Shown here: one piece after another, positions 14,294 to 45,079 of the stretch
Numbering within the stretch: the first letter of the stretch is position 1
Layout of the letters: each line of letters begins with the position of its first letter
Source: Squalus acanthias
Taxonomy: Eukaryota
Assembly (NCBI GenBank): GCA_030390025.1
Contig: CM059425.1
Span: forward strand, 260,710,001 to 260,774,000
Direction: 5' to 3'
DNA length: 64,000 bases
Translations under genes and position numbers: made by a program
The notes under the pieces: model-generated
Told to the model about the DNA's origin: nothing
Database searches by the model: none
What the model saw: the letters and a program-made list of their open reading frames with translations, nothing else

Positions 14294-14313
14294 TCAGATG
14301 AAGCTTCTTTCAG
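14294..14313 (-). CDS. Gene A probable terminal exon start (AERSFI* in the exon-skipping isoform), continuing as 3'UTR toward AATAAA at 14070-14065
   Basis: Acceptor tttgatgtttcag; phase 1 matches the 15549-15671 exon. Confidence 0.45.
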
Positions 14314-14353
14314 CTGAAACATCAAATCAGGGTTATTATGAATTATATATAAC

Positions 14354-14786
14354 GGGCAACACGGTGGCATAGTGGTTAGCACTGGTGCCTCACAGCGCCA
14401 GAGACCCGGGTTCAAACCTGACCTCGGGTGACTGTCTGTGTGGAGTTTGCACATTCTCCCCGTGTCTGCGTGGGTTTCCTCCGGGTGCTCCGGTTTCCTC
14501 CCACAGTCCAAAAATGTGTGGGTTAGGTGATTTGGCTATGATAAATTGACCCTTAGTGTTAGGGGGGATTAAATATGTGGGGTTATGGGGATAGGATGGG
14601 ATATGTTAGGGGGAATTAAATATGTGGGGTTACGGGGGTAGGGTGGGATATGTGTACTGTGGGGATTAAAGCAGGGACAGGGTACTGGATTTGGATGATC
14701 AGCCATGATCGTATTGAATGGCGGAGCAGGCTCGACGGGCCGAATGGCCTACTCCTGCTCCTAGATTCTATGTTTCTATGTTTCTA
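14354..14786 (+). mobile_element. HE1-like V-SINE, full length
   Basis: A box GGTGGCATAGTGG, B box GGTTCAAACC, V-domain, CR1-derived tail. Confidence 0.9.
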
Positions 14787-15548
14787 TATATTGTCCTTCA
14801 GTACGGTGGCCGTGAGGGGAGATTGATTGTATGAGCGCGCTGCTATTAAGAAATCCATCCTTTATTTGGCAGCACACTGGAGACCGTGCTGGAGGAGGGC
14901 AGTGCAGAGCGACGCACCCCACTTCCAACTCGGAAAGAAAACACAGAGAGTTGAGGTACGGACCAGCCACGATCTGATTGAATGACGGAACGGGCTCGAG
15001 GGGCCGAACGGCCTACTCCTGTTCCTAGAATGCACATCCCTGGTGTGACATGCATTTCAAAGCGTCATATCCAAGGGGAGCTGGAGAACAGAACCGTTCA
15101 CAAGCAGTGCGAGGCTTTCACGGATGTAGCCTCAGCGGGGATGAACTTGGCAGCAGTGGAACGTAGGAACAGGAAGAGGCCATTCAGCCCCTCGAGCCTG
15201 CTCCGCCATCCAATCAGATCATAGCTTACCAGTTCCCCCAACTCCATTTCCTCACCTTTGCTCCACATCCCACGATACCCTTACCCAACAAAAATAGACA
15301 CCGGTCTACAAGTGCAGTTGTGGACGTTACATTGTTGGCTATTTTCCTTCGAGGGAGGTAATCAGGTTCGGTTTAGGACTGCTTTGGCTCCCAGATGACA
15401 TTTCTGGTGACGAGAGACTCGAGCCAAGTCAATAAATGCCGGCCTTGCCGGCGACGCCCACATCCCGAGAATGAAAGTTGCAGCTCGTGAAAATTCCAGC
15501 AGAACCTCTGCACACACTCGGCACGCGGAAGTATTGGCTCTTGCCAAC

Positions 15549-15671
15549 CTGCACGTAGATTCACGTAGGAACTGGGATGTTCTGCCCCACGGGATGAGAC
15601 TGTGGATCCCGCATCAGGCAGTAGATTGCTTCTGGCGATTGATGGCTCTCCGTGTGTGTCAAGACAACCAG
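15549..15671 (-). CDS. Gene A candidate cytoplasmic exon (123 nt); phase-1 frame ...AEHPSSYVNLRA, phase-0 frame ...SPEAIYCLMRDPQ...PT*
   Basis: Acceptor gttttggatcag, donor gttggc; length divisible by 3; Tyr motifs in two frames. Confidence 0.5.
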
Positions 15672-15887
15672 CTGATCCAAAACAACACCCGTAAAAGTCA
15701 CAATTCATCCAATTGTGTCGACGCACAGAATGGGCGGTCAGGCGATGACGACCATTTGACGCAGAATCGGACTCCTTTCAGGTGAAACATGTCTCGAGTT
15801 GTTGTATTTTGGGTTAACCGCCCTTCTGCGATTTATAGTCCCAGGGTGTGACAGGAGTGAAGTGTCGTACACAATAAAACTCCTCAC

Positions 15888-15934
15888 TTATAGATTGTTC
15901 ACTTCCTTCGATGTTTCAGCAGTGCAGGTCACCT
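15888..15934 (-). CDS. Gene A cytoplasmic exon (47 nt): EVTCTAETSKEVNNL*
   Basis: Strong acceptor cctttttttacag; TAA is the last codon, directly before donor gtgagg. Confidence 0.6.
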
Positions 15935-15957
15935 CTGTAAAAAAAGGAATGAATTTA

Positions 15958-16327
15958 AACATAGAAACATAGAAACTAGGAGCAGGAGTAGGCCATTCGG
16001 CCCGTCGAGCCTGCTCCACCATTCAATATGATCATGGCTGATCATCCAAATCCAGTACCCTGTCCCTGCTTTCTCACACAGAATCCCCATCGAGCCTGCA
16101 CCGACACATATCCCACCCTATCCCCGTAACCCCACGTATTTAATTCCCCCTAACATATCCCATCCTATCCCCGTAACCCCACATATTTAATCCCCCCCTA
16201 ACACTAAGGGTCAATTTATCATAGCCAAATCAACCTAACCCGCACATCTTTGGACTGTGGGAGGAAACCGGAGCACCCGGAGGAAACCCACGCAGACACG
16301 GGGAGAATGTGCAAACTCCACACAGAC
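15958..16327 (-). mobile_element. HE1-like V-SINE, 5' truncated
   Basis: Near-identical to the 5223-5657 copy. Confidence 0.85.
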
Positions 16328-16409
16328 TTCAGTATTGGAGACAATCTCACCGTGTTACCAAGGCACCGAACTCCAACCCTGTCACGTTAACACCGAGTTT
16401 TACGCACTT

Positions 16410-17376
16410 CAATCTTTCCAGCACATTCCGCTCGGGAATTCTTTCTAGAATATTCTGCTCGGAGATTCTTTCTAGAATATTCTGCTCGGAGATTCTTTCT
16501 AGCACATTCCGCTCAGAGATTCTTTCTAGCACATTCCGCTCGGAGATTCTTTCTAGCACATTCCGCCTGGAGATTCTTTCTAGCACATTCTGCTCGGAGA
16601 TTCTTTCTAGCACATTCCGCTCGGAGATTCTTTCTAGCACATTCTGCTCGGAGATTCTTTCTAGAATATTCTGCTCGGAGATTCTTTCTAGCACATTCCA
16701 CTCGGAGATTCTTTCTAGCACATTCTGCTCGGAGATTCTTTCTAGCACATTCCGCTCGGAGATTCTTTCTAGCACATTCTGCTCGGAGATTCTTTCTAGA
16801 ATATTCTGCTCGGAGATTCTTTCTAGCACATTCCGCTCGGAGATTCTTTCTAGCACATTCCGCTCAGAGATTCTTTCTAGCACATTCCGCTCAGTGATTC
16901 TTTCTAGCACATTCTGCTCAGAGATTCTTTCTAGAATATTCTGCTCGGAGATTCTTTCTAGCACATTCCGCTCAGAGATTCTTTCTAGAATATTCTGCTC
17001 GGAGATTCTTTCTAGCACATTCCGCTCAGAGATTCTTTCTAGAATATTCTGCGCTGAGATTCTTTCTAGCACATTCTCCCCGGAGATTCTTTCTAGCACA
17101 TTCTCCCCGGAGATTCTTTCTAGCACATTCTCCCCGGAGATTCTTTCTAGCACATTCTCCCCGGAGATTCTTTCTAGCACATTCTGCGCTGAGATTCTTT
17201 CTAGAATATTCTGCCCGGAGATTCTTTCTAGCACATTCTGCCCGGGGATTCTTTCTAGCACATTCTGCCCGGGGATTCTTTCTAGCACATTCCACTCGGA
17301 GATTCTTTCTAGCACATTCCGTTCAGAGATTCTTTCTAACACATTCCGCTCAGAGATTCTTTCTAGAATATTCTGT
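16410..17376. repeat. 27-bp minisatellite (TTCTTTCTAGCACATTCCGCTCGGAGA), roughly 35 copies
   Basis: Directly visible; a unit divisible by 3 explains the repetitive ORFs on both strands. Confidence 0.95.
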
Positions 17377-17680
17377 TTCCACCATCCTTTCAGGCAGTGC
17401 ATTCCAGATCATAACAACTCGCTGCGTAAAAGAAAATCCTCAGGTCGCCTCTTTTTTTTGACAATTACTTTCAATCTGTGCCCTCTGGTTACCGACCCTT
17501 CTGCCACTGGAAACAGTTTCTCCTCATTTACTCGATCAAAACCCTTCATAATTTTAAACAACTCGATTAAATCTCCTCTTAAGCTTCTCCACTCTAAGGA
17601 GAACAATCCCAGCCTCGCTAGTTAAATAATTGAATAATTATTTAATTGTTGGAAGTCACTGTCAGTGGGTCCACAGTTAC

Positions 17681-17742
17681 CTGATATTGACTGCTGCTGA
17701 TACAGCTTAGCTTTACAATACTTGGGTGAATCCGGCTGGTAT
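17681..17742 (-). CDS. Gene A cytoplasmic exon (62 nt, phase 2-1): RYQPDSPKYCKAKLYQQQSIS
   Basis: Acceptor ttccttatctcttag, donor gtaact; phase matches its neighbours. Confidence 0.7.
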
Positions 17743-17884
17743 CTAAGAGATAAGGAAGAAATAGAATTAAACTATAATTGTTATGACAGACAGACGCAAT
17801 ATTCACAGCAAGTTCCACTGAAGCCATGTCATGTCAGGACTCGCCCTCACTGACCCTTAGACACACAACTCTCCAACTGTGTCA

Positions 17885-18490
17885 GTGGTGACGACTCAAA
17901 ACAAATGGATGTTGAGCCAGAAACAGAGATATTAGGATTGCTGATGAAAACTTGGTCAAACAGGCAGGTTTTAAGAAGCGTCTTAAAGGAGGAGTGGGAA
18001 GCGGAGAGGTTTAGGGAGGGATTTCCAGAGCATAGGGTCCAGGTGACTGAAGGCACGGCCGCCAATAGTGGGACATTGTGGGGGGCGGGGAGGGTGAGCA
18101 AGAGGCCAGAGTCAGAGGAACGGAGGGAACTCAGGGAGGTTGCAGGGTGGAGGAGGTTTTGGCGACGGGGAGCGGGAGGCCTGAAAAGGATTTAAACACG
18201 AGGATGAGAATTTTAAACTTTGAGGCATCGGCGGGGGATCAGGAACCAATGTCGCTCAGTGAGGTCAGCAGTGACGGGTGAGGAGGACTTGATGTGGGAT
18301 AGGATACGGGCAACGGAGCCTTGGATGAGCTGAGGCTGGCAGAGACTGGAGGATGGGAGGCCGGCCAGGAGAGCGTTGGAATAGTCGAGTCTGGGGGTAG
18401 CAAAGGCTTGAAGGAGGGTTTGAGCAACAGATGGGCTGAGGTAGGTGATATGATAGAGGTGGAAGTGGCCAGTCTTTGTGATGGAGAGGA
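17885..18490 (-). mobile_element. L2-like LINE 3' fragment
   Basis: Degenerate reverse complement of the L2 3' end at 55860-56420. Confidence 0.65.
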
Positions 18491-19781
18491 CACACAGACT
18501 CTGTGACTGCGTCAGTGAAACCTGGAGGGCTATTTTAACCTATTTCCCCTGTTGGGGGGGGGGAAGAATCCCGCGGGATCGGGAGAAACGCCGGTTTTAC
18601 ACCCGACCAATATTACTCTTCAGTGACTTCAATAGAGAGTAAAGTCGGGCGGGCTGTAAATCCAGCGCTGCGCCCGATCCCCTCAGTTTCCCGACGGGGA
18701 GTTAAGGTTAACACTGCACCTCCCTCAAGTTAGAAATGCCCAGAAAAAAATCACTTCATTTTGAAGTGAGGCGCGACAATTAGTTTCCCAAATGTCCTCC
18801 CCTTTCCTCCTGAAGGACTGCTCTCTAGTTGGGCTACAGGTCCACAGGCACTGACAGCTCCAATAACAACCCCAACTGCCCATTATTCACATGTGAGCAA
18901 AGACAGCGAGTCTCAGCAGGCTATTCGGCCATGTAGGGAATCGCTGCCCTGCCTCATCCCATCTCGACGTCCAATAGCAGGGGGTCACTGGATCGTGATC
19001 AGAAGCAGGAACCCTGGCTGGTTTGTTTCCTCTTTCCAATCCCTGGTTTAGAATCAAAGAATCTTACAGCACAGAAAGAGGCCATTCGGCCCATCGTGCC
19101 TGTGCCGGCTCTTTGAAAGAGCTCTCCAATTCGTCCCACTCCCTCTTTCGCCATAGCCCTGAAAATATTTCCTTTTCAAGTATTTATCCAATTCCCCTTT
19201 GAAAATTATTATTGAATCTGTTTCCACCACCCTTTCAGGCCGTGCGTTCCATTATGTGTCACAATTCCCAGCAGTCTGATGGGCTTAACCGTCCTTGGGA
19301 ATCTGAAGGGTTCTTAAGGCCCATTCCCTTGGGAATCTGAAGGGTATTTAAGGCCCATTCCCTTGGGAATCTGAAGGGTATTGAAGGCTAATTCTGTGTG
19401 TTCTAGTTCCTGGAATTTTGATGGGCCTGAGGAACCCAGTTCTCTGGCAGTCCGATAAAACTGTACCTTGCTCATACATCTAGGAAGACAATTAGTCCGT
19501 TCGGCCCATTGGCCCTGCTCCACCACATTCTTAGCACGACAGCCCCTGATTATTTCGATCCCAATGCCCACCCTTCCTTCAGGTCCCATATTTATAGAAG
19601 TTCAGGTTGATGTAAACTGCCTTTCTGAGCACAGGTACTGAAATACAAACCGAAATGTGGCTACAGCTAAGAAATGGCCTCCAAATTAAATACTAATTTG
19701 ACATAGATTGTCGTAATGATATCACTTTAAGAAAACATAGCAACATGATTAATAGAGAAAAGCTGTAAGGTGGAATCGTAC

Positions 19782-19812
19782 CTTTCTCTCTGTGGGGTAA
19801 ACGTCGCTCTTC
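19782..19812 (-). CDS. Gene A first cytoplasmic exon (31 nt, phase 1-2): GRATFTPQRE
   Basis: Long polypyrimidine acceptor tctttctttccccattcag, donor gtacga. Confidence 0.7.
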
Positions 19813-19939
19813 CTGAATGGGGAAAGAAAGACAAGAGATTTTAAGCACTGTCTCATTGCTGATCAGATATCTCAGTTCCCATGCACTCACTGTGGTGAGT
19901 TAATAGTTCATTTGGTGCACTGTCGCATTCGAATGTGCC

Positions 19940-20372
19940 TCGCTGGACCAGCCACATAAATACTGTGGCTACAAGAGCAGGTCAGAGGCTGGGTATTCTG
20001 CGGCGAGTGTCTCACCTCCTGACTCCACAAAGCCTTTCCACCATCTACAAGGCACAAGTAAGGAGTGTGATGGAATACTCTCCACTTGCCTGGATGAGTA
20101 CAGCTCCAACAACAATCAAGAAGCTCGACACCATCCAGGACAAAGCAGCCTGCTTGATTGGCACCCCATCCACCACCTTAAACATTCACTCCCTCCACCA
20201 CCGGCGCACCGTAGCTGCAGTGTGTACCATCTACAAGATGCACTGCAGCAACTCGCCAAGGGTTCTGCAAAACCCGCGACCTCTACCACCTTGAAGGACA
20301 AGAGCAGCAGGTGCATGGGAACACGAGCACCCACCTCCAAGTTCCCCTCCAAGTCCACGCCATCCTGACTTG
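19940..20372 (+). mobile_element. CR1-clade LINE ORF2 C-terminal fragment (second family)
   Basis: LSTIYKAQVRSVMEYSPLAW...HSLHHRRTVAAVCTIYK; further copies at 30130-30700, 42380-42750, 45165-45460, 50350-50710 and 51825-52140 (-). Confidence 0.8.
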
Positions 20373-20603
20373 GTCTCTCCCTCTCATTGCCTGTCGCTAG
20401 ATCTCCCCCTCCAGTTTCCTGTCTCCTCCCCAGTCACTCCCTCTCATTTCCTTTCAGTTCCCTCACCTTTTGATTTGCAGTTTCTGGTGTAACTTGAGGT
20501 TAGGCCGTCCCACCCTTAGACACCCAAACTATATATATTTTAAATGAACCCAATGCAAAATGAGTACAGCGACATCGTCAGTCCTTGACTTATAATAACC
20601 TAC

Positions 20604-20987
20604 CTCTCCTTCTCCTCCAGATCACTAAGGCAATAACAACCAGGATTATCAGAACGACACTTCCAACCGAAACATAGATCATGAGTTCGAGCAGAAACCG
20701 CTCCCCGTCGACGCTGGTGAAGTAGATGGCGTGGGCGACACTGCCTTGGTCGTTGGTGGCCACACAGCTGTAGTTTCCCCTAAGCTTCGGGTCGTGTAGT
20801 TCTCCCACCATCTGGTACTTCCCCGGCCCTCGCATTACCGGTGTGTTGCTGCCGTTCACGGGGAGTCTGTTGTTCTGGGGATCAATCCACATGATGTTTG
20901 GGGAGGGTTCCCCTTCCACCAGGCACACTAAGGTGAACTGCGTGGCGTTAACGACTGTGATAGACAGGTTGAGGATGGCTGGCGGGC
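20604..20987 (-). CDS. Gene A Ig C2-set + TM exon (384 nt, phase 1-1)
   Basis: LVCLVEGEPSPNIMW...GNYSCVATN; TM LMIYVSVGSVVLIILVVIALVIW followed by RRRR; acceptor tttgttctcag, donor gtaggt. Confidence 0.92.
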
Positions 20988-22321
20988 CTGAGAACAAACA
21001 GGATAGACGCGCGATTAAAGTAAGACACTGACACACGGAGCAGTCCACCTCGTGACTGCTGCATCGATCCAGTGTATTTAAAGACAGACAGGATCCCAGA
21101 CTGTGTGACTCACTGGGCTAGAAGAGGAAGCAGGTGGCAGGAAATCATCATCAAGACCGCAAAGAGGAAGATGTAAAAATGATACTTCAGTCCCACTCCA
21201 GAGACTTGAGCACAAAATCTCGGCTGACACTCTAGCGCAGTACTGAGGGAGTGCTGCCGTCTTTCAGAGGAGACGTTAAACAGAGGCCCCATCTGCCCTC
21301 TCAGGTGGACGTAAAGGATCCCATGGCACTATTAGATAGAAGAGCAGGGGAGTTCTCCCCATGTCCTGGCCAATATTTATCTCTCAACCAACATAACACA
21401 AACAGATTATCTGGTCATTACCTCATTTATGGGACCTTGTGCGCAAACTGTCTGCCGAGTGTGGGGGTGAGAAAGCCAAGGGTGGGAGTTTCAGCGGCAG
21501 GTGGGCTGAGGCAGGGGCGGAGACAGGCAATATTATGGGAGTGGAAGTAGGCGGTCTTTGTGATGGAGAGAACATGGGGTTGGAAGCTCAGCTTGGGATT
21601 GAATAGAATACGGTCTGGTTCAGCTCGAGACAGTGGCCAGGAAGGGGGTGTAGTTGGTAGCAGAGATACGGAGGTTATGTTGGCGGTCAAAGGCAATGGC
21701 TTTGGTCTTCCCAATATTTAGCTGGAGGAAATTATGTCTCATCCAAGATTGGATGTCAGGCAATCAGTCTGAAAACACACAGAGAGGCAACGGAAGGGTC
21801 GAGAGAGCTGGTGGCGGGGTAGAGCTGGGTGGCGTACATGTGAAAGCTTACAATCTCACCAAAGGGCTGCATGTAGATGAGGAAGCAGAGGGGACCAAGC
21901 ATGGATCCTTGGGGTACATCCCAAGGTGACAATGCAGGGGCAGGAAAAGAAGGCATTGCTCTGGCTGCACTTGCACAGTTAAGAGCGGAACCAGGCGAGG
22001 GCAGTCGCAATGAGCTGGACAATGGAGGAGAGGCATTGGTGGAGGATGGTGTGGTTGACCATGTCAAAGGTTGCAGACTGGTTAAGGAGGAGGAAAAGGG
22101 GGGGGGGGGGGACAATACAACAACAGCTTGCATTTATAGAGCACCATTAACGTAGTAAAACATCCCAAGGCGTTTTCAGGGAGGCCCCGCCACTGCCGCG
22201 TGTTACAGAGGATCGCAGAGCTAATCGAGAGAGAGAAGAGACTGTCACCCATCAGTCACACTCAGGGCTGGTCTAACGCTATCCAGCATCCCCCAGCAAT
22301 TTAGGTTCCTGTTGAATTTAC

Positions 22322-22732
22322 CTGTTACTTCCAAGATGGTTCCAGGGTTGGTTTCATCCATGAAAGTTTGCAGTCCCTGACGTTTGACTTCCACACGACA
22401 GAAGTACTGACTGTTGTCATCGAGCATGGCATGTTTCAGCTCTAACGAAGCATCGTTTTGCCTGGGGTCCCCGGCCAGTCCGTATCGGTCATTGACGTTT
22501 GTGTGAACTACATTTTCGAACTCCTTGTCGTGATCCTTGACCCTGTTGGTCGAGTTGAACAGAACCGGCCCTTTGTAAAACACCTTGATCTTCCAGATGA
22601 CTGTAATCTCAAAGGTAGTGTAATGAGAATAGGAGGAGTTGAACTGGCAGGGCAAAACGACAGAGCTTCCGACCATCCCGCTCACTCGCCTCGGTACTTT
22701 CACGGACACTGGCACCAGCACTCCATTACTTC
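22322..22732 (-). CDS. Gene A Ig V-set exon (411 nt, phase 1-1), Siglec-15-like with the F-strand Arg
   Basis: VVLPCQF...W...GDPRQNDASL...QYFCRVEV resembles Siglec-15 (GNPRRNDLSL...RYFCRVEF); canonical splice sites. Confidence 0.92.
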
Positions 22733-22869
22733 CTACAGGGACGCAAGAGTCAGGGAGTCAATGAACTGCTTGTTCAATGGCCCACGATGGAGCCTCTCAG
22801 CCAAATGACATCAAATGCATTTTCTTATCGAGGCCAAAAAAAAAACGATCAAAATTGCCCCCTTTTTTT

Positions 22870-23714: not shown

Positions 23715-24272
23715 GTCAAAGAGTCATAACGGCACAGAAGGAGGCCATTCGACCCATCGAGTCCCTGCCAGCTCTTTGTAGAGCAATCCAGTCAGTCCCA
23801 TTCCCCCGCTCTATCCCCGTAGCCCTGCAAGTTTATTTCCCTCAAGTGCCTATCCAGTCTCCCCTTGAAAACATTGAGTGTCTCCGCTTCCACCACTTCC
23901 ATCGGCAGCGAGTTCCAGGTCCTCACCACTCGCTGCGTAAAAAAGTTTTTCCCTCACGTCCCCCCTGTATATCTTGCCCAAAACCTTAAATCTGTGTCCC
24001 CTAGTCCTTGTACCATCAACTAGTGGGAACAGCCTTTCCCGGTCTAGCCTATCCAAACCCGTCATAATCTTGTACACTTCTATCAAATCACCCCTCAACC
24101 TCCTTTGCTCTAATGAAAACAAATCCAGCTTCTCCAAACTGTCCTGGTAGCTAAGATCCCCCATCCCCAGAACCATTCTGGTAAATCTCCTCTGCACCCT
24201 CTCAAGGGCCTTCACATCCTTCCTAAAATGTGGTGACCAGAACTGGACGCAATACTCCAGTTGTGGCCTAAT
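23715..24272 (-). mobile_element. CR1 3' end
   Basis: KALERVQRRFTRMV...TRGHRFKV; very similar to 40060-40615. Confidence 0.85.
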
Positions 24273-25135
24273 TGGAGAGCTCTTTCAAACAGGCACGATG
24301 GGCCGAATGGCCTCCTTTTGAGCTGTATGATTCTAACTCTGATGTGAAGCCCGGCAATGATGAAGCAAGAACAAATTTAGCTTTAACGTTTATTTTAGTG
24401 AATGCTGGAGCTTAATCCTGGAGGCTTCCTTTATTGTGGTTAAGCCACAGCTCTGTCCCGTATCCCTCACAAGTGTACAGATCTGTGAGAATGAGCGTTG
24501 AAACGGGAACTAGCTAGTTGTGGTGCGGCCATGTGACACACACACAGCCTTGCACAAGCCTTGGCATGTGACCTGGCCTCTGGGTTTGTGGTTTTCAAGA
24601 GGTTGAAATTGCAGAATGAAAACCCCAATAAGAATTCTGAAATCTCATGGAATTTAAATAATTCAGTCACCGTAAAACAATGTCCCCTTTTTTCAAGTGT
24701 TATGGAATACAGTGGGTTTCCCCCCCACTGCTCGCGTTGTTTACATTCATACGCAAAACAGATTCAATCCCTTAGAATAGGTTTGAAATGGTCTAAGAAA
24801 TAAACTCCGCAGTTGAAGTACATCCTCGTGACGATTACGTGGATGAATAAGGAAGTCAACAAACTTGCAATAATGCTGTAGAATGTCCCAAAGTGCTTCA
24901 CAGCAGAGCCACCGATGCTGAGGCGGTAGTTGAAGGGTTTGGGGAGATGACTAAATGTAGGATCCAAAAGATAGGTTGGGGAAGTCTCTTGAAGGCAGAG
25001 AGAGAGAGAGAGAAGCAGGGCTGGAAGGGGTTAAAGGGGGCCGAGCCAGCTGAAGGCTACCCCCACCCACCCCCCATAGTGGAACAATGGGAGGGTGGGT
25101 GAGGTCCTTAGGGGGTCAGTGCAGGGGTGGGGGAA

Positions 25136-25608
25136 ACATAGAAAAATAGGAGCAGGAGTAGGCCATTCGGCCCTTTGAGCCTGCTCCGCCATTCAATATG
25201 ATCATGGCTGATCCTCTATCTCAATACCATATTCCCGCTCTCTCCCCATACCCCTTGATGCCTTTTGTGTCTAGAAATCAATCTATCTATCTCCTTCTTA
25301 AATATATTCAGTGACTTGGCCTCCACAGCCTTCTGTGGTAGAAAATTCCACAGGTTCACCCTCTGAGTGAAGAAATTTCTCCTCATCTCAGTCCTAAATG
25401 TCCTACCCCGTATCCTGAGACTGTGACCCCTTGTTCTAGACCCCCCAGCCAGGGGAAACATCCTCCCTGCATCCAGTCTGTCTAGCCCTGTCAGAATTTT
25501 ATACGTTTCAATGAGATCCCCTCTCATTCTTCTAAACTCTAGTGAATACAGGCCTAGTCGACCCAATCTCTCCTCGTACGACAGTCCTGCCATCCCAGGA
25601 ATCAGCCA
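25136..25608 (-). mobile_element. CR1/HER1 3' end
   Basis: GLSYEERLGRLGLYSLEFRRMRGDLIETYK. Confidence 0.85.
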
Positions 25609-28541: not shown

Positions 28542-28593
28542 CAGAGCCAGAGACAGAGAGCAGGAGTGGGACCAGTAGGGAAAGAATGTCCAT
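28542..28593 (-). CDS. Gene A leader exon: MDILSLLVPLLLSVSGS(G)
   Basis: Kozak-like AAGATGG; hydrophobic signal peptide; phase-1 donor gtatgt in frame with the V exon. Confidence 0.85.
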
Positions 28594-35200: not shown

Positions 35201-36603
35201 CTGTATCTCAACTCCATCCACCCGCCTTGGTTCCTTATCCTTTGATACCCTCGCCCAACAACAATCTATCGATCTCAGTCTTGAAAGCTCCACTTGACCC
35301 CCAGCATCCACAGCCTTTTGGGGGGTGGGGGGAGAGTTCCAGATTTCCACTACCCATTGTGTGAAGAAGGGCTTCCTGACATCACCCCTGAACGGCCTGG
35401 CTTTAATTTTCAGGTTGTGCCCCCTTGTTCAAGAGTCCACCCCCCCCCCCACCATCAGAGGAGATAGCTTCTCCATATTGAACAAAACCAGAAGCAAAAC
35501 CTCATGGTGTAGGTTGCTCGGTTGCAGGGATGTGAGGAGTGCGCGACGGTGAGAGGCGTTTACAGAAAGAGCACCCACCTTACAATGTACCTGGTCATGG
35601 GGCAACATGGAGTGGAGGAGAAGCTGTGACCTCGTCTTTGTCCAACAGCTTAAACAGCCAATCCTCAGCACTGGTGCTGCTGCCGACATTGCCAAGAAAC
35701 TTCCCCTCCACAAACCACACGGCTGTTTTTACAGAAAATAGTTCCCCACCACCAGATGACCAGTGATGACAGGATTGGACAGGCCTCATTTAGAAACATT
35801 TTAAAGACTACAACAACAACAACTAGCTTTAACGTAGAAAAACATCCCAAAGCGCTTCACGGGGGCGTTATCAGAGAAGAAATTGGATTTGAGCCAAAGA
35901 AGGAGATATGAGGACAGGAAGCTGTAGGTTTTAAGGAGAGTCTTAAAGGAGGATCAAGAGGTGGAGAGGTTTAGGGAGGGAATTCCAGAGCTCAGGGCCC
36001 AGGCAGCTGAAGGCCCGGCCACCAATGGCGGGGCGAAGGAAGTAAGGGATGCGAAAGAGAATTGGGGGAACTCCGAGATCTGAGGGTTTTAGGGCTGGAG
36101 AAGGTTACAGAGATAGGCAGGGGCGAGGCCGTGGAGGGAGTTGAAGACGAGGATGAGAATTTTAAGATTGAGACGTTGCTGGATCGGGAGCCAAAATAAA
36201 TACAAACATATGGAGAAAACTTTATTTCTTTCGGTCAGTTTATAATGTACAGAGTGTTACCGATGTAGATTACTGGCCTCCTTGACATCCATTGTGGAGT
36301 TTGAATCTTTTTTTAACGACGCCAAACTCTATTCTTGTTGCCACTCGTGGTACATTAAAGCTTTGTGTTTTAAGAGTTTTATTGAGGCTTGGGATTACAG
36401 CAGAGTCCGATTGCCTACAAATTATTGACATATAAAGACTTGTATTTATATAGCGCCTTTCATGACCTCAGGACGTCCCAAAGCACTTTACAACCAATTA
36501 AGTACTTTTTGAAGTGTAGTCACTGTTGCAATGTAGGAAACGTGGCAGCCAATTTGCGTACAGCAAGCTCCCACAAACAGCGATGAGATAATAACCAGAT
36601 AAT

Positions 36604-37347
36604 GGCCCAGAAATTAAAGACGGAGCCTTCCTGCGGGGGTAAGGCTTCCCCGCGATATCTCACTGCGCGCCTGCCTTTTCCTTCCGAGCTCGCACGAACT
36701 TTAGTTTCAAGACTGCAGCTGTGCAGTGTGTGCGTATCCCACAGACGCAGTTAATTCGTGCGAGCTGTGGGATCACGTGATTCAGTTAGAGCCAATGGCA
36801 GCACACCATCTTTCATTCATAGTTTTCACAGCAAGGGCTGTCAAAGCTATGAATCTATACCCCCCCAAAAGAACAGCTAAACCTCAATTAAATTTAAAAA
36901 AAAACCCATCACATTAATAAAATAAGTATAGTTAAATAAATTAACCACTTTAAACAAAAAATTAAATTTTTGAAAAAATTTAAAATCTTTTTAAAAGTTA
37001 TAAAAATAAACTTACCTTTCTTTAAAGTCTCTAAAAAAGATATACCTGTTGAAAAAAATTCAAAAAAATACTTAATTAACTACTTACCTTGTTAAAAGAG
37101 GGTCTTACGCCTCCGTTCTTTATGTGCAAAATCTTCCATGCTTACCTGCGCGTTTAAAGCACTAAGTGCACTGCGTGCGCGCAGCCTGTAGCGCGCACGC
37201 GGTTCACTTAGGAACCGCCCCCTTTTGAAATCACCAAGTGCCGGTTTTCAGCGCATGCGCAGTGCATGCAGAAAACCGGCAATTGGAGACAGAATACGCG
37301 AGAGTACACAGTGCGTACTCTCGCGTCCTGAGACTAATTTTTGGGCC
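36604..37347. mobile_element. Harbinger-type MITE, same family as 3584-4341 in opposite orientation
   Basis: TIRs GGCCCAGAAATTA / TAATTTTTGGGCC; TSD AAT; splits a DeuSINE; interior is the reverse complement of the 3584 copy. Confidence 0.85.
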
Positions 37348-37697
37348 AATCTGTTTAAGTAATGTTGGTTCAGGGATAAATATTGGCCAGGACACCGGGG
37401 AGAACTCACCCCCCCCCCTGCTCTTCTTCAGTGCCACGGGATCTTTTACAATGGAGGGGGCAGATCAGGCTTCGGTTTAACATCTCATCCAAAAGACGGC
37501 ACCTCCGACAGTGCAGCACTCCCTCAGCACTGCACTGGGAGTGTCAGTCTAGAGAGAAGAGATAAAAACAGAAAAAAAGGGAAGACAAACTAATACTGTG
37601 GATGCCCTTTTGTGCATCGCATTCAGGACTGGAGCCTGTTACAGAGACAGGAGACTAACAAAGGGTCATGTAGTGAGTCACAGGTCTTTACTTACCC

Positions 37698-37719
37698 TCA
37701 GGCTGTACGGTCACTTAAT
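37698..37719 (-). CDS. Gene B last coding exon: RLSDRTA* (exon 37696-37719)
   Basis: Acceptor ttttctatttcctcccacag; donor gtaagt 2 nt after the TGA; phase 2 matches. Confidence 0.7.
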
Positions 37720-38202
37720 CTGTGGGAGGAAATAGAAAAGTAAATATTCAACTGTGCTTAGTCCAATAGACATTCAGTATTTTAAACTTACCATACATAA
37801 GAGGTATCTAATATGTAAGATAATAGAAATTGGAATTAAAACTATGAATTGCAAAGCCAGATATCCCCACCTCAAAGTTGAGGAATGTACCAAAGATTTT
37901 TAAGGACATTGAAGGTTGGGGAGAGTTGAGAACTATTATTCACACTCACAGTTCTGAGTCTCCATATTCTGGGAAGATGTGGATTTATTTCCATCATATT
38001 TATCAATGGGGCTATTGGTAAAAGGGAAATGAAACATTCCTCAGGTGGATTGAAATGACCCGAAAACCCCACAGATTCCCGGGCCACCACCATTGCATAA
38101 ATCCGTGTCCCTGGCAACACTACTTTGTGTAAAACCTCTGTCAAGAGATCTTCTAGTATATATGAAGTAATAAAATTCTGATGAACAACTCTTAAAAATT
38201 AC

Positions 38203-38239
38203 CTGTCACAGTTAAAAAGTTCAGTGTATTTATCAAGAT
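38203..38239 (-). CDS. Gene B cytoplasmic exon (37 nt, phase 1-2): DLDKYTELFNCD
   Basis: Acceptor cctgcttctccag, donor gtaatt; same phase pattern as the first tail exon of gene A. Confidence 0.7.
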
Positions 38240-38367
38240 CTGGAGAAGCAGGTTTATGGTTTTCAGTCACATTTGGGGTCCATTTTTATCAATTTGAGCA
38301 GTAATTACTTCACTGATTATTTCCTCGTACCTGGTTTAAATCACAAAACAGCCAAAGATTGACGCAC

Positions 38368-38751
38368 CTTTTATTCTAATGAAGAGAATGATCCCCGTTA
38401 TCAGAAGGAGGAGAAATTTAGCTAGAGGGATCAGGCACAGCATCCCGATAATGAAATTCGAGTAGTTCCTGTCATCAGCGGGTAAGTGGATCTGACGGAC
38501 GTCACTCCCGTGTTCATTTGCAGCCACACAGCTGTAGTCCCCTCTCAGCGTTGGGTTCAGAATCTCTCCCACAGTTTGATGTTTGTCCGGCACTCGTGTG
38601 ACTGTCGTGCTACTGCTGTCCACGGGCAGTGCGTTGTTTTCAGGGTCGATCCATGTGATGTTTGCGGGTGGCTCCCCTTCAACCTTGCACACGATGGTTT
38701 CTCCAGTTATATTATCGGTCACAACCGACAGCTCCAGGATGGTGGCTGGAG
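38368..38751 (-). CDS. Gene B Ig C2-set + TM exon (384 nt, phase 1-1), TM contains Lys
   Basis: IVCKVEGEPPANITW...GDYSCVAANEHG; TM FIIGMLCLIPLAKFLLLLITGIILFI; same length as the gene A exon. Confidence 0.92.
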
Positions 38752-38844
38752 CTTGGGGAGGAAGGAAAGATGTAGATAAGTCCTTTGTGAATTGTTAAAA
38801 CTTAAGGAACATAAGACCTGGTTTCAGAATGGGCCATAAAGAAA

Positions 38845-39315
38845 GAAAGACTTGCATTTCTCCAGCGCCTTTCATGACCTCAGGATGTCCCAAAGTGCTT
38901 TACAGCCAATGAAATACTTTTGGAGTGTACTCACTGTTGTAATGTAGGAAACGCGGCAGCCAATTTGCGCAAAGCAAGCTCCCACAAATAGCAATATGAT
39001 AATGACCAGATAACGTGGTTTTAGTGATGTTGATTGATTGAGGGGTAAATATTGGCCAGGACACGGGGGATAATTCCCCTGTTCTTCTTCAAAATAGTGG
39101 CCGTGGGATCTTTTACGTCCACCTGAGAGAACAGACGGGGCCTCGGTTTGACGTTTCATCAGAAAGACGGCACCTCTGACAGTGCAGCACTCACTCAGTA
39201 CTATATTGAAGTGTCAGACTAGATTTTTGTTCTCAAATCTCTGGAGTGGGACTTAAACCCACAACTTTCTGACTCAGAGGCGAGAGTGCTGCCCACTGAG
39301 CCACTGGCTGACACA
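38845..39315 (-). mobile_element. DeuSINE (SacSINE1-like)
   Basis: Reverse complement of the 31741 element. Confidence 0.8.
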
Positions 39316-39383
39316 ACTCCATGGTTTCTAATCTCGAGTCTTATCTGCGGCTCGCTAATTATAAACTCGTGTCAAAGTTGAAT

Positions 39384-40616
39384 TTTTTGATGAAGTAACA
39401 GGGGGGATCGATGAAGGGAATGCAACAGATGTTGTCTACATGGATTTTCGGAAGGCGTTTGACAAAGTACCACATAGAAGGCTGGTTAACAAAATTGAGG
39501 CTCATGGAATAGGTGGGTCAGTGGCAGCTTGGAAAAGGAATTGGCTTAAATACAGAAAACAGTGAATTGTGGTAAATGGCTGTTTTTCAGACTGGAGGAT
39601 GGTAGACAGTGGTGTTCCCCAAGGGTCAGTGCTGGGGCCACTGCTTTTTTTGATATATATAAATGACTTGGATATTGGAATACAGAGTAGAATTTCTAAA
39701 TTTGCCGATGACACCAAACTTGGAGGTGTGGCAAACAGTGAGGATGATACCAATCGACTGCAACAGGACATAGAAAGGCTGGCAGAATGGGCAGACAAGT
39801 GGCAGATGGAATTTAATACAGAGAAGTGTGAGGTGATGCATTTTGGCAGAAGGAACAGGGAGAGGCAATATACACCTAATGGCACACTTTTAAAGAGTGT
39901 GCAGGGACAGAGGGACCTGGGAGTTAATGTGCATAGGTCCCTGAAGGTGGCGGGACATATTGAGAGAGTGGTTAACAAAGCATATGGGATCTTGGGCTTC
40001 ATAAATAGAGGTATTGAGTGCAAAAGTAGAGAAGTTATGCTGAACCTTTATAAAGCGCTGGTTAGGCCACAACTGGAGTATTGCATCCAGTTCTGCTCAC
40101 CACACTTTAGGAAGGATGTGAAGTCCCTTGAGAGGGTGCAGAGGGGATTTACCAGAATGGTTCTGGGGATGGTGGATCTGAGCTACAAGGACAGGCTGGA
40201 GAAGCTGGATTTGTTTTCATTTGAGCAAAGGAGGTTGAGGGGTGATTTGATGGAGGTGTACAAGATTATGACGGGTTTGGATAGGCGAGACGGGGAAAGG
40301 CTGTTCCCACTAGTTGATGGTACAAGGACTAGGGGACACAGATTTAAGGTTTTGGGCAAGTGATACAGGGGGGACGTGAGGAAAAACTTTTTTACGCAGC
40401 GAGTGGTGAGGACCTGGAATTCGCTGCCGATGGAAGTGGTGGAAGCGGAGACACTCAATGTTTTCAAGGGGAGACTGGATAGGCACTTGAGGGAAATAAA
40501 CTTGCAGGGCTACGGGGATAGAGCGGGGGGAATGGGACTGACTGGATTGCTCTACAGAGAGCTGGCACAGACTCGATGAGCCAAATGGCCTCCTTCTGTG
40601 CTGTTATGACTCTATG
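39384..40616 (+). mobile_element. CR1 LINE, 5' truncated (~1.2 kb), RT C-terminal half with stops
   Basis: SGVPQGSVLGPLLFLIYINDLD...KFADDTKL...LVRPQLEYC; (TATGACTC)-type tail. Confidence 0.92.
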
Positions 40617-42850
40617 ACATGCTCGCATCTACACTCTCCATTCAGCTAAACTTCACGCCTTGGATAATGCCTTCTCAGGAATATATGTTCAATTTGGCGA
40701 ATCTCATTTCATGAAGGATATATTGTATTGAGCTTAGTGGGGGTGGTACCAGGATACCAGGACTTAAAGGAGTAAATAATGACGACAGGTTGCATAAACC
40801 TGGGTTGCATTCCCTTAAGTTTAGAATTTTAATTGAGGTTTAAAATGGTGAAAGGATTCGACAGAGTAGATAAAGAGAAATTATTTCCTCTGGTGGAGGA
40901 GTCCAAAATAATGGGGCGTAACCTTAAAATTAGAACCATGCCATTCAACAACAAAAACAATAACTTGCATTTATGTAGCGCCTTTAATGTAGTAAAACAT
41001 CCCGAGGTGCTGGACAGTAAAATATGACACCGAGCCACATAACGAGGTATTAGGAATGTGACCAAAGTTCACAGATGTAGGTATTAAGGATTGTCTTAGA
41101 GGAGGAAAGGGAGGTAGAGAGGTGGAGAAGTTGAGGGAGGGACTTCCTGAGGTTGGGGCCCAGGCAGCTGAAGGCGCGGCGGACCAGGAGCCAGTGTAGG
41201 TCAGCGAGCACAGGGGGTGATGGGTGAACGGGACTTGGTGCGAGTTAGGACACGGGGCAGCAGAGTTTGGATGAGCTCAAGTTTACGGAGGGTGGAATGT
41301 GGGAGGCCGGGCAGGAGTGTGTTGGAATAGTCAAGTCTAGAGATAACAGAGGCATGGATGGGGGTTTCAGCAGCAGATGAGCTGAGGCAGGGGCAGAGTC
41401 GGGCGATGTTACGGAGGTGGAAGTAGGAGGTCTTGGTGATGAAGAGGATATGTGGTCGGAAGCTCAGCTCGAGGTCAAAGCCTCAGACAGTTGGTGGCTG
41501 GGGAAAGGAGTTTGTGGCGGGGACCGAAGACAATGGCTTCAGGAATGAAATCAGGAAGTGCTTTTACACACAAAGGGTGGTGGAAGTCTGGAACACTCCC
41601 CCCAAAAGTCTGTAGATGATGGGGGACAATTGGAGCTTTCAAGACTGAGAAGATAGATTTTTTTTTAGATAAGGGTATGGGGCAAAGGTGGGTAGATGGA
41701 GTTGAGGTACAGATGAGCCATGATTTAGTTGAATGGCGGAGCAGGCTGCTGGGCTTGAATGGCCGACCCCTGTTCCTATGTTCCATTAACTGCTTTGACT
41801 GGGAGTCTTTTCTACATCTCCATTATTCTTTGAGTTGTTTCTAATCTCGAATCCTGCCTGAGGCTTGTTAATTATATGCTCGTGCCCAAGTTGAATAACA
41901 TGTTCGCATCTACGTAAGTTTGAGCTCATCTAAAACTCTGCTCCCGTGTCCTACCTCGCACCAAGTCCCGTTCACCCATCACCCCTGCGCTCACTGACCT
42001 ACATCGGCTCCCGGTTAAGCAACACCTTCAAGTTAAAATTCTCATCCTTGTTTCAAATCTCTCCATGGCCTCGCCCCCTCCCTATGTCTGTAACGCCATC
42101 CCTACAACCCTCTGTGATCTCTGCGCTCCTCCAATTCTAATCGATAAGTAGATGGGTGGTGGAAGCAGATTCAATAATAACTTTCAGAGGGGAATTGGAT
42201 ATATAATTGAAGGGGAAAAAAATTGCAGGGCTGTGGGGAAAGAGCAGGGGGAGTGGGACTAATTGGATCGCTCTTTCAAAGAGCCGGCACAGGCAGGATG
42301 GGCCGAATGGCCTCCTTCTGTGCTGTAATGATTCTTTGATTCTATGAAGTAGTTTTTTTTGCCTTAGTGCACAGTACAGTACATTCACTCCCTCCACCAC
42401 CGGCGCACCATGGCTGCAGTGTGTACCATCTACAGGATGCACGGCAGCAACTCGCCAAGGCTCCTCCCAAACCCGCGACCTCCACCGCCAATAAGGACGA
42501 GGGCAGCAGGTACATGGGACCACCTCCAAGTCACACACCATTCCAGCTTGGACAGATATAATCGCCATTCCTTCATCGTCGCTGGGTCAAAACCCAGGAA
42601 CTCCCTCCCTAACAGCACTGTGGGAGTACCTTCACCACACGGACTGCAGCGGTTCAAGAAGGGGGCTCACCACCACCTTCTCAAGGGCAACTAGGGATGG
42701 GCAATAAATGTCGGCCTTGCCAGCGACGCCCACATCCCGAGAATGAGTGAAAAAAACCACCATTAAAAACATTCAATGACCAGATGAGAAAATACATAAA
42801 TGGTCAAAAGTCATGTTTTCCTGTTGTCATTGACGTAGATGTTTCCTTAC

Positions 42851-43219
42851 CAACAACCTGTAGTCTCATCACATCCTGAGTCACGTTTTCCCCTCGCTCA
42901 TTCTCGATGTGCACGTGACAGAAGTAGTCGCTGGTGTCGTTCAGCCCCAGGTCCCTCATCCTTATGGAGGCGTCTCCTTGGGTTGGGTTTCTGATCAGCT
43001 CATATCGATCTCCTTGATTTACACTAACTGTGTCAGTATAGTGAGAACCAGCGGCAAGGAAACGAGTGTGATTAAAAACAGTGGACTCTTGGCATGGATT
43101 CTCCTTCATCCAGAGGACAGTGATGGAGCTCGGATACCGGCCAGGGGGACTGAAGGTGCAGGGCAGTGTGGCAGAATCTCCCTTCTTCCCAGTCACTGGT
43201 CGGGTATTGTTCTTATCAG
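42851..43219 (-). CDS. Gene B second Ig V-set exon (369 nt, phase 1-1)
   Basis: SATLPCTF...W...NPTQGDASI...DTSDYFCHVHI; acceptor ttctctacctcag, donor gtaagg. Confidence 0.9.
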
Positions 43220-43374
43220 CTGAGGTAGAGAACGGTTTTGAAGAATGGACATTATTCATTAGCACAGTGCATTAAACACAGTTTACACTACGTTTGCATG
43301 TGTGGCGATATTCTCTGAAACAGAAAGTGAGGCATCTTTACAACAAATATAAAGGACTACTTCCCCTCCAATAA

Positions 43375-43843
43375 AAAGAAAGACTTGCATTTCTACAGCA
43401 CCTTTCATGACATCAGGACGTCCCAAAGCGCTTTACAGCCAATGAAGTACTTTTGAAGTGTAGTCACTGTTGTAATGTAGGAAACGAGGCAGCCAATTTG
43501 CACACAGCAAGCTCCCACAAGCAGCATTGTGATAATGACCAGATAATCTGTTTCTCAGTGATGTTGGCTGAGGGATAAATATTGGCCAGGACACCTGGGG
43601 AGAACTCCCCTGCTCTTCTTCGAATATTGCTGCGGGATCTTTTACGTCCACTTCAGAGAGCAGACGGGGCCTCGGTTTAACGTCTCATCTGAAAGACGGC
43701 ACCTCCGACAGTGCAGCACTCCCTCAGCACTGCACTGGGTGTGTGTGCCTGGATTATGGGCTCAAGTCCCTGGAATGGGACTATGAACCCACAACCTTCT
43801 GACTCAGAGGCAAGAATGCTACCCACTGAGCCACAGCTGACAC
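43375..43843 (-). mobile_element. DeuSINE (SacSINE1-like)
   Basis: Reverse complement of the 31741 element. Confidence 0.8.
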
Positions 43844-44683
43844 AGAGAAGGCTAAGATGAGATTTATTCAAGGTTTTTTAAAATTATAAAGAGTTTTGAT
43901 AGAACATAAGAACTTAAGAATTAGGAGCAGGAGTCGGCCATACGGCCCATCGAGCCTGCTCCGCCATTCAATAAGACCATGGTAAATTTTTACATTAACT
44001 CCACTTTCCCGCCCGATCCCCATATCCCTTGATTCCCTTAGTGCCCAAGAATCTATCGATCTCCGCCTTGAATATACTCAACGACTGAGCATCCTCAGCC
44101 CTCTGAGGTAGAGAATTCCAAAGATTCACAACCCTCTGAGTGAAGAAATTTCTCCTCATCTCAGTCCTAAATGGCCGACCCCTTATTCTGAGACTGTGAC
44201 CCCTGGTTCTAGACTCTCCAGCCAGGGGAAACATCCTCCCTGCATCTACCCTGTCAAGCCCTCTAAGAATTTTGTATGTTTCAATGAGATCACCTGCCAT
44301 TCTTCTAAACTCCAGAGGATATAGCCCATTCTATTCAATCTTTTTGAATAGTGGTCATGGGATCCTTTACGTCCACCTGAGAGGGCAGACGGGCCTCAGT
44401 TTGTCTCATCCGAAAGACAGCACCGAGCCACATAAGGAGATATTAGAAAAGGTGACCAAAAGCTTGGGTCAAAGAGGGCGGTTCACATGATGGGGCTCAG
44501 GGGGCGGATATGCATGAAAAGGAAAAATTTACAGGGCTATGGGGAAAGAGCCGGGGAGTGGGACTAATTGGACAGCTCTTTCAAAGAGCCGGCACAGGCA
44601 CACTGGGCCAAATGGTCTCCTTCTGTGTTGGATGATTCTATGACCCCAATTATCTGATTTTCCAGCTTTAAACAATTCCTCAC

Positions 44684-45079
44684 CTGATACAAGAATTGTT
44701 TGAAACAAGCTTTGGGATGTTTGATTCGAATATTCCTGGAGATCCACAAGGCAAATATATTGTTGATAGTTATCGCGTAGAGTCAATGATTTAATGATGA
44801 TGGAAGCGTCGTTCTCCCTCGGGTTTCCCATCACTCGGTAGCGCTCGTCCAAATTCTGATGGATCAGATTCTCAAACCCATTGCTCTGCGAGTTGAGCGA
44901 CGGATAATTTGTGTAACTAAAAAGCGTCACATTTATCCACCTTTCCTTCCAGGTGACGGTGATGTTGCCTTGATATCCAGGGTGAGGGTGAGTGAACTTG
45001 CAGAACAGAACAACAGACTTCCCTTCCCTACCCGTCACCCTATCTGGGGTCTCCATACTCCAGTTATACTCACCGAAAC
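44684..45079 (-). CDS. Gene B first Ig V-set exon (396 nt, phase 1-1), Siglec-15-like
   Basis: WSMETP...VLFCKFTHPHPGYQGNITVTWK (Siglec-15 has LPCTFTHPH)...GNPRENDASI...YICLVD; acceptor ttcttatgcctcacag, donor gtgagg. Confidence 0.9.

Follow-up and report, generated by a model that had tools for sequence, protein, structure and literature searches.

We describe a cluster of genes of the Siglec-15 family in a stretch of 64,000 nucleotides from Squalus acanthias (assembly GCA_030390025.1, contig CM059425.1, positions 260,710,001 to 260,774,000 of the forward strand), which we call the window and in which positions are counted from its first letter. In plus-strand order it holds gene P on the plus strand, genes A and B on the minus strand, and a decayed exon resembling the second V domain (V2) of gene B. 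In sharks, rays and chimaera the arginine (Arg) of the sialic-acid site and the membrane lysine (Lys) known from Siglec-15 are found in different linked genes, and a twin whose tail carries an immunoreceptor tyrosine-based inhibitory motif (ITIM) stands alongside.

According to our analysis, the predicted Siglec-15-family cluster is old and conserved in chondrichthyans, and its gene models are already public under inconsistent names. We consider it rather probable, with some reserve, that the whole is best explained by an old chondrichthyan cluster of three gene types, in which B and P form a pair and A is a separate, older paralogue.

Membership of the Siglec-15 family

Pfam assigns the three V exons of genes A and B to V-set and both C2 exons to Ig_3/I-set. 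The best match among solved structures of all three V exons is human Siglec-15 (7ZOZ), with E-values of 9.5e-14 for the V exon of gene A, 4.6e-12 for V2 of gene B and 9.7e-11 for the first V domain (V1) of gene B; the next families, namely Siglec-10, CD33, CD276, VSIG4, TIM and PILR, follow at E 1e-5 to 1e-8. An AlphaFold2 model of B V1, with a mean predicted local distance difference test score (pLDDT) of 88.7, leads to the same structure, since Foldseek places 7ZOZ_A first (E 4.6e-10, template modelling score 0.78, root-mean-square deviation 2.8), and the runners-up, myelin P0 and CRIg, come at E 2e-7 or weaker (best 2.3e-7, with a template modelling score of 0.60) and template modelling scores of 0.60-0.68. 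The C2 exons are without a family signal, because many I-set domains match them better than Siglec-15 does. The Siglec-15-like identity proposed in the initial annotation of this DNA, which was made from the letters alone, is therefore borne out by 7ZOZ ranking first, by sequence for the three V domains and by fold for B V1; clustering with a non-Siglec family was looked for in these comparisons and was not seen.

The key residues of genes A and B

The F-strand Arg of Siglec-15, R143, is needed for sialic-acid binding, and its membrane Lys couples to DAP12/DAP10, as stated in PMC7226832. In our alignment the Arg of 7ZOZ (YFCRVEF) falls on an Arg in gene A, on leucine (Leu) in B V1 and on histidine (His) in B V2.

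Gene A agrees with the Siglec-15 plan, having one V-set domain, one C2-set domain and a single membrane span. As the initial annotation had read it, its V domain keeps the F-strand Arg (QYFCRVEV) and its membrane segment is without Lys; the hydrophobic core has neither Lys nor Arg, and a glutamate (Glu) stands at its outer edge. Since gene A keeps the Arg, it is predicted to be, and probably is, the sialic-acid-binding member of the cluster. The long tail bearing tyrosine (Tyr) that had been ascribed to it stands in part: there are three Tyr residues, but the length is corrected to about 40 residues, and none of the three lies in the context of an ITIM ([SIVL]xYxx[IVL]) or of an immunoreceptor tyrosine-based switch motif (ITSM). 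One site of the tail reads PKYCKA, where the two nearest relatives have SKYCKV. A homology of this short, Tyr-bearing tail with that of tetrapod Siglec-15 is possible.

Gene B is, again in agreement with what was first read, a V-V-C2 protein with a Lys in the membrane (PLAKFLLLL) and no Arg in either V domain. In the alignment this Lys is no more than one column away from that of bird Siglec-15 (VPLGIKVLILL), and the additional V-set domain, absent from the Siglec-15 plan, is kept from chimaera to sharks. Because the Arg is replaced in both V domains, the canonical salt bridge with sialic acid is unlikely in gene B, which is probably not a usual sialic-acid binder. Gene B would rather be an adaptor-dependent activating receptor, its Lys pairing with the membrane aspartate (Asp) of DAP12, DAP10 or a chain of the FcR-gamma type; we suggest this because mammalian Siglec-15 and similar receptors work so. 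Our literature searches, in which PMC4016189 was included, returned nothing on DAP12 in cartilaginous fish.

A tail of about 22 residues with a YxxL motif, read earlier from an acceptor at 38239, is less likely, as no orthologue model has such a tail. Eight of the ten B-type orthologues have 4-9 residues after the 21-residue membrane window, nine of the ten have no Tyr there, and the shark models end with ...KIKD. The tail of gene B is probably one residue long, as the exon that we place next (Table 1) agrees with these shark models, though acceptors at 38239 and about 37807 may serve as alternatives.

Relatives, conservation and linkage

Relatives were collected by a scan of 1.84 billion representatives with the V exon of gene A as query, which gave 228 proteins at E <= 0.001, 150 of the 228 being listed; a homologue search with the Amia protein P0027 as query returned P0027 only. 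Three gene types can be told apart in chondrichthyans. The A type is V-C2, with a length of about 290-330 residues that is exceeded in rays. Among the matches listed it bears the name Siglec-15 in the sharks Carcharodon, Cetorhinus, Mustelus, Heterodontus, Pristiophorus, Scyliorhinus, Heptranchias, Hemiscyllium, Chiloscyllium and Rhincodon, and also in Amblyraja, Leucoraja, Hypanus and Callorhinchus; the nearest relative of gene A among the matches listed is that of the sawshark Pristiophorus japonicus, with 85% identity in V and 83% in C2. The B type, which is V-V-C2 and has some 400 residues, occurs in the same groups under the names Siglec-15, Siglec-12, CXADR-like membrane protein or uncharacterized, and its membrane segment is almost invariant. 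The third, ITIM type is again V-V-C2, its membrane segment being neutral and its tail long; it is represented by Heptranchias P0012/P0179, Heterodontus P0189 (a partial model) and Pristis P0184. Among the public models are XP_041041398 (Carcharodon) and XP_067885298 (Heterodontus) for the A type, XP_067885297 (Heterodontus) and GCC37643 (Chiloscyllium) for the B type, and XP_067838215-218 (Heptranchias) for the ITIM type, and full-length orthologue models of the A and B types come from more than 10 species.

The two residues were counted over this collection. Arg occupies its column in all 15 A-type rows (the window included), in 15 of 15 rows of bony vertebrates and in both V1 domains of the ITIM type. 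In the V1 domains of the B type the column holds Leu in 8 of 11, Arg in two (Mustelus and one Callorhinchus gene) and tryptophan in one, and in V2 of the B and ITIM types it holds His in 12 of 14, with one Arg and one Tyr. The membrane Lys is present in 10/10 B-type orthologues and in 0/14 of the A type. Residue counts over orthologues thus extend to many chondrichthyans the placing of Arg and membrane Lys in different genes that had been noticed in this DNA. As for the tails, an ITIM-like motif occurs in 7/14 A-type orthologues and an ITSM-like one in 1/14; the loose ITIM-like pattern also matches the row of the mammalian Siglec-15 tail, and therefore proves little.

Some side observations on the family can be added here. 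Directly before the hydrophobic core, nine of the 14 A-type proteins, all nine from sharks, have Lys or Arg; at this position window gene A and Callorhinchus have Glu, and the rays have neither. The lungfish and ray proteins P0001, P0004, P0010, P0011, P0180 and P0188 contain from three to seven Siglec-15-like V domains and reach 1128 residues, so that the multiplication of V domains goes far beyond V-V-C2. The lungfish protein P0007, named Siglec-15, has two V domains, which appear in the V tree as a recent internal copy.

The types are also neighbours elsewhere. In Heterodontus the protein accessions of types A and B follow one another directly, as do their GenBank accessions in Chiloscyllium punctatum and, on one 141-kb contig, their locus tags in Scyliorhinus torazame; in Heptranchias the A type is directly followed by the ITIM type in accession order, and in Callorhinchus the accessions are close and on one chromosome. 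The synteny in other chondrichthyans, which had been named as a check of the first reading, is accordingly seen as adjacent gene types in at least four species, by the order of accessions or locus tags.

Partners within the cluster

Genes B and P meet within the 64 kb, gene P with its ITIM tail (VIYATI) as against the mid-membrane Lys and the tail of probably one residue of gene B. By tblastn, the tail exons of gene P find their matches in the tails of two ITIM-type proteins, P0012 of Heptranchias and P0189 of Heterodontus, and its last exon agrees with their C-termini in 64% of 14 and 75% of 12 residues, respectively. Gene P would be the ITIM-tailed V-V-C2 counterpart of gene B, of a type that keeps Arg in V1 and has V2 and C2 close to those of the Lys form.

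Trees were built from 42 proteins hand-picked from the 244 collected, together with the window exons; P0174, P0194, P0192, P0023, P0179 and all multi-V lungfish and ray proteins were among those left out. The V tree had one distant outgroup (P0104) and the C2 tree had none; Amia, Salminus and Astyanax were dropped from the C2 tree, their matches being too short, and no C2 match came from Albula, Conger or the loach. The A-type clades, chimaera included, are supported with 96/88 in V and 95/89 in C2, and the clades of the B and ITIM types with 96/83 in V1 and 100/100 in V2. As both the A and the B clades include the chimaera, these lineages predate the split of chimaera and elasmobranchs. The V domain of gene A shares 38% identity with B V1 and 30% with B V2, and the C2 domains of A and B share 53%.

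The Lys and ITIM forms are much closer to each other. They are identical in 85% of V2 and 94% of C2 in Heterodontus, and in Pristis in 80% of V2, 85% of C2 and 49% of V1; window gene B and the Heterodontus B type share 70% of V2 and 78% of C2, which is below these values between the two forms within one species. In agreement with it, the Lys and ITIM forms cluster by species, with support of 100/97 and 98/78 in V2 and of 99/96 and 99/97 in C2. Such clustering by species, together with the high identity of V2 and C2, is consistent with sequence exchange or with repeated recent duplication, both marks of paired receptors. The V1 of the ITIM form falls outside the V1 group of the elasmobranch B type and keeps its Arg. 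From these data the gene P type is most likely the better-supported partner of gene B, rather than gene A, and gene A is probably a separate, older paralogue and not the twin of B.

The trees do not single out any of the chondrichthyan types as the one-to-one orthologue of tetrapod Siglec-15. In the V tree bony-vertebrate Siglec-15 (93/92) goes with the V domains of B (94/83) and A is outside; approximately unbiased (AU) tests reject neither the grouping of A with bony-vertebrate Siglec-15 (p 0.279) nor a single clade of all chondrichthyan V domains (p 0.263). In the C2 tree, which had no outgroup, A and B are on one side of a branch (96/93) from all bony-vertebrate rows.

Gene models and other features of the window

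The exons and other features are collected in Table 1. Splice junctions of genes A and B were placed by consensus splice sites and by protein models of orthologues. The five immunoglobulin (Ig) exons of the two genes are all on the minus strand, open, flanked by AG and GT, and of phase 1-1. Phase 1 is usual for exons of Ig domains, and the phase pattern shared by A and B is therefore no special sign. It is different with the size of the two C2 exons, since their products align without a gap over all 127 residues, residue for residue (44% identity over 124 residues, E 1e-35 by BLASTP), for which reason the equal length of 384 nucleotides is taken as inherited and not as a chance. Exon reading thus upholds the earlier description of two same-strand genes with an identically sized C2 and membrane exon and a shared phase pattern. 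Of the range 14294-45079 given there, the gene A end at 14294 agrees with our predicted stop, but the gene B end does not stand, as the predicted leader exon of gene B lies about 7.8 kb beyond it. The view that these are two separate genes stands as well: each has its own leader exon, matching the N-termini of its respective orthologues.

The leader of gene A has a hydrophobic core and a donor G/GTATGT, with a TATA-like AT-rich box about 100 nucleotides upstream. A scan for ATG, hydrophobic core and phase-1 donor found it as the sole convincing leader between the genes, and it matches the N-terminus MDIVSLLLPLLLSVS of the Pristiophorus orthologue P0169. The leader of gene B ends with a donor G/GTGCGT and matches the N-termini MLAVLFCVIAQVSCSG and MSEGLKRTVLAVLLC of B-type orthologues.

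In the cytoplasmic part of gene A, the 62-nucleotide exon is related to the tail of Carcharodon Siglec-15 (P0002) with 63% over 19 residues, which is a weak match (tblastn E 0.39). Another frame of this exon was rejected, having no match among orthologues, while the frame reading YQPDSPKYCKAKLYQQQSIS does match. This frame makes necessary an upstream exon of phase 1 to 2, and there is a candidate exon of this kind, with 31 nucleotides; it came from a scan for AG...GT exons of the right phase and matches the ...TATFTPQ... of orthologue tails. The frame of the last exon is predicted from the phase of the preceding one and is the weakest part of the gene A model.

Table 1. Exons and related features of genes P, A and B in the window.
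Feature	Position	Strand	Description
Gene P, first visible cytoplasmic repeat exon	949-1020	+	72 nt, PQELGSGGVYSVVNFRESQQAET
Gene P, second cytoplasmic repeat exon	4730-4801	+	72 nt, PQESESLPVYSTVKCLRPHQAVT; tblastn E about 1e-6
Gene P, third cytoplasmic repeat exon	5772-5843	+	72 nt, AQEGEAALYSTVNKPKPPQAEQT
Gene P, last coding exon	12822-12863	+	canonical ITIM VIYATI near the C-terminus
Gene A, last exon start	14294-14313	-	split codon, ERSFI, stop at 14294-14296; acceptor ...ttcag
Gene A, cytoplasmic exon	17681-17742	-	62 nt, phase 2 to 1, reads YQPDSPKYCKAKLYQQQSIS, holds Tyr residues
Gene A, cytoplasmic exon	19782-19812	-	31 nt, phase 1 to 2, internal codons RATFTPQRE; predicted
Gene A, C2-set and membrane exon	20604-20987	-	384 nt, phase 1-1; Glu at the outer membrane edge
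Gene A, V-set exon	22322-22732	-	411 nt, phase 1-1; F-strand Arg in YFCRVE; Pfam V-set E 1.1e-10
Gene A, leader exon	28542-28593	-	ATG at 28593, signal peptide MDILSLLVPLLLSVSGS, leaves phase 1; predicted
Gene B, likely next exon	37696-37719	-	split codon gives Asp, then stop; protein end ...RIKD
Gene B, C2-set and membrane exon	38368-38751	-	384 nt, phase 1-1; mid-membrane Lys (IPLAKFLLLL)
Gene B, V2 exon	42851-43219	-	369 nt, phase 1-1; His at the Arg site (DYFCHVHI); Pfam V-set E 5.8e-16
Gene B, V1 exon	44684-45079	-	396 nt, phase 1-1; Leu at the Siglec Arg site (QYICLVDL)
Gene B, leader exon	52849-52924	-	ATG at 52924 or 52897, ...MLTALLCMSAQVTCAG, leaves phase 1; predicted
Decayed V2-like exon	58464-58786	+	two stop codons, frame shift, no YFC motif

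Genes P and A lie tail to tail, gene P running toward gene A. A local tblastn with the five exon products found no further intact exon of the family in the 64-kb window; its single weak additional match was V2-like, on the plus strand near 58.5 kb, and for this decayed exon no partner exons were found nearby.

Fragments of open reading frames (ORFs) of the reverse transcriptase of long interspersed nuclear elements (LINE type) are scattered in introns and spacers, at 39569-40363 (plus strand, 264 residues), 2623-3318 (minus), 24000-25600 (minus) and 58995-59498 (plus). An intron of gene P contains, at 6150-10050, a long purine-rich block of simple repeats with a G+C content of 0.55-0.57 and a GC skew of +0.63, interrupted by several runs of N and giving very long false ORFs in all frames. 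The gene A intron between the 62-nucleotide exon and the last exon holds a 27-nucleotide minisatellite (16413-17375; 35.7 copies, 90% matching), from which long false ORFs arise on both strands.

Alternative explanations

Several points weigh against the cluster of three types with B and P as its pair, and they should be named together. The Ig exons of gene P are to the left of the window, and the likeness of its ectodomain to gene B is seen in other species only, and linkage in other species is read from annotation and accession order and not from coordinates. The outer, ligand-binding V1 is the least similar domain of the Lys and ITIM forms, which is the reverse of Siglec-5/14, and with V1 so divergent B and its ITIM twin may not share a ligand. 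Gene A could be inhibitory, as was first proposed, in the species whose A-type tails have ITIM-like motifs. Around a DS.Y motif the tails of the A type can be aligned with that of the bird protein, but this alignment is short and possibly due to chance. Splicing and expression of A and B in this species are predicted from gene models. Ten runs hold a part of 20500-22800, none of them recorded as RNA; four of them, from one study, contain a share of 0.36-0.42 of the words sampled from this stretch, and its two exons make up 0.35 of it, so that the share of words is about what contigs of transcripts would give, the RNA nature of these runs being our guess.

The explanation that comes next is the one proposed in the initial annotation, by which a Siglec-15-like ancestor was duplicated and its functions were divided between A, a sialic-acid-sensing modulatory or inhibitory receptor, and B, an activating receptor coupled to an adaptor and having another ligand. 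Much can be said in its favour. The Arg only in A and the Lys only in B are conserved, A and B are neighbours in at least four species, 8/14 A-type tails have an ITIM-like or ITSM-like motif, the C2 branch (96/93) sets A and B apart from the bony-vertebrate rows, and a single chondrichthyan V clade is not rejected (p 0.263). The bird-like context of the Lys in B and the DS.Y-aligned tail in A also fit the idea of a split, as would be expected of an ancestor that had both of them. Nevertheless, A and B do not look like a couple of paired receptors: the identity of their ectodomains (30-38% in V and 53% in C2) is far from that of known pairs, they differ in the number of domains, the tail of window gene A has no ITIM (PKYCKA instead of SKYCKV), and B has a closer ITIM twin linked to it. 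Their split is older than the divergence of chimaera and elasmobranchs, and a C2 tree without an outgroup, though grouping A with B, is silent on the order of events. We therefore regard this division of functions between A and B as unlikely.

A little less likely again, in our opinion, is that these genes are ordinary diverged paralogues of the Ig superfamily without any role as lectins, in which the Arg is structural and A, B and P bind proteins and are not coupled to each other. The cloned zebrafish orthologue of Siglec-15 did not strongly bind the glycans tested, according to PMC7226832, which would agree with it. The V domains of the B type have no Arg and yet are undecayed, with frames intact in 10 orthologue models, and some members are publicly named 'CXADR-like membrane protein' or 'CD276 antigen homolog'. 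Against it stands the invariance of the Arg (A type 15/15, bony vertebrates 15/15, V1 of the ITIM type 2/2) and the fact that Siglec-15 is always the best match, by sequence and by fold.

That the exons belong to one gene, or to unexpressed pseudogenes, hardly deserves belief: a decayed V2-like exon is indeed present, and the junctions were not derived from RNA, but every exon is open, the splice sites follow the consensus and the phases fit together, both types have full-length models in more than 10 species, the runs hold about as large a share of words as the exons take up in the gene A stretch, and the reading of A and B as a single gene was rejected because each of them has a leader exon with a signal peptide matching its own orthologues.

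Significance

Returning to the cluster of three types with B and P as its pair, the window alone gives a modest result, in that the genes are real and conserved and their models are already in the public annotation of relatives. We found no paper on Siglec-15-type genes of cartilaginous fish, in a search that left subscription journals and supplements largely outside. If binding and adaptor coupling were true for these genes, the pairing of activating and inhibitory Siglecs would date to early jawed vertebrates, we would have a natural case of an activating partner without the canonical contact to the sugar, and the public naming of these genes, now inconsistent, could be put right.

We may go further and suggest, only tentatively and as something less likely than not, a very old paired Siglec system on the Siglec-15 scaffold, arisen before the split of sharks and rays and perhaps of the chimaera. 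It would consist of an ITIM form with the Arg in its outer V domain, of a twin of the DAP12 type with the Arg replaced and the outer domain remodelled, the inner domains of the two being kept nearly identical by repeated exchange, and of a third, V-C2 gene with the Arg and the tail of tetrapod Siglec-15. Hypothetically, tetrapod Siglec-15 would then be one surviving combination and not the ancestral form, and the activating twin could be a counter-measure receptor with a ligand other than sialic acid.

Comparison with known receptor systems

Close to this cluster are the other chondrichthyan RefSeq and GenBank models, which agree with it in the three gene types, in the residues and in the neighbourhood; these are automatic models, and the best identity to the window is 85%.

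The ray-finned proteins named 'Siglec-15' or 'siglec15l' (Amia P0027, sturgeon P0066, Astyanax P0028, Conger P0081) resemble gene A: they are V-C2 proteins that have the Arg, no Lys in the membrane, and Tyr motifs in the tail. They differ in grouping with tetrapod Siglec-15 in the V tree (93/92) and not with gene A, and in the Y.N or ITIM motifs of their tails, which are absent from window gene A. Siglec-15 has been described as a single conserved gene that keeps its Arg and membrane Lys 'from fish to mammals' in PMC7226832, where sharks are not covered. Among the fish proteins annotated as Siglec-15, P0027, P0028, P0038, P0043 and P0066 (Amia, Astyanax, Salminus, Latimeria, sturgeon) have no membrane Lys, and the characiform P0076 has it; the stated conservation of the Lys therefore fails for some annotated genes.

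PILR-alpha and PILR-beta resemble this cluster by a V-set domain with an F-strand Arg and by forming a pair of an ITIM receptor and one with a charged membrane segment, and the V exon of gene A has a weak match to PILR among solved structures (E about 1e-3). This match falls short of that to Siglec-15 by about ten orders of magnitude, and PILR has only one V domain and lacks a C2 domain.

With the mammalian paired Siglecs the cluster shares an ITIM-tailed partner (the gene P type) linked to a short-tailed partner with a basic membrane residue (the gene B type), and also parts of ectodomains that are similar within a species, as in Heterodontus and Pristis. In the mammalian pairs Siglec-5/14 and Siglec-11/16 it is the N-terminal domains that are kept alike, whereas here V2 and C2 are alike and V1 is divergent, with Arg in the V1 of the ITIM form and Leu in that of the Lys form. 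Besides, the family is here Siglec-15-like and not CD33-related.

Mammalian and avian Siglec-15 (7ZOZ; bird P0072) is alike in the match of the V domains, in the V-C2-membrane plan and Arg of gene A, and in the Lys of gene B, which is set in a PL..K.L.LL context. The difference is that gene B possesses an additional V domain and hardly any tail, and that the Arg, the Lys and the tail, which tetrapod Siglec-15 unites in one protein, are here spread over several genes.

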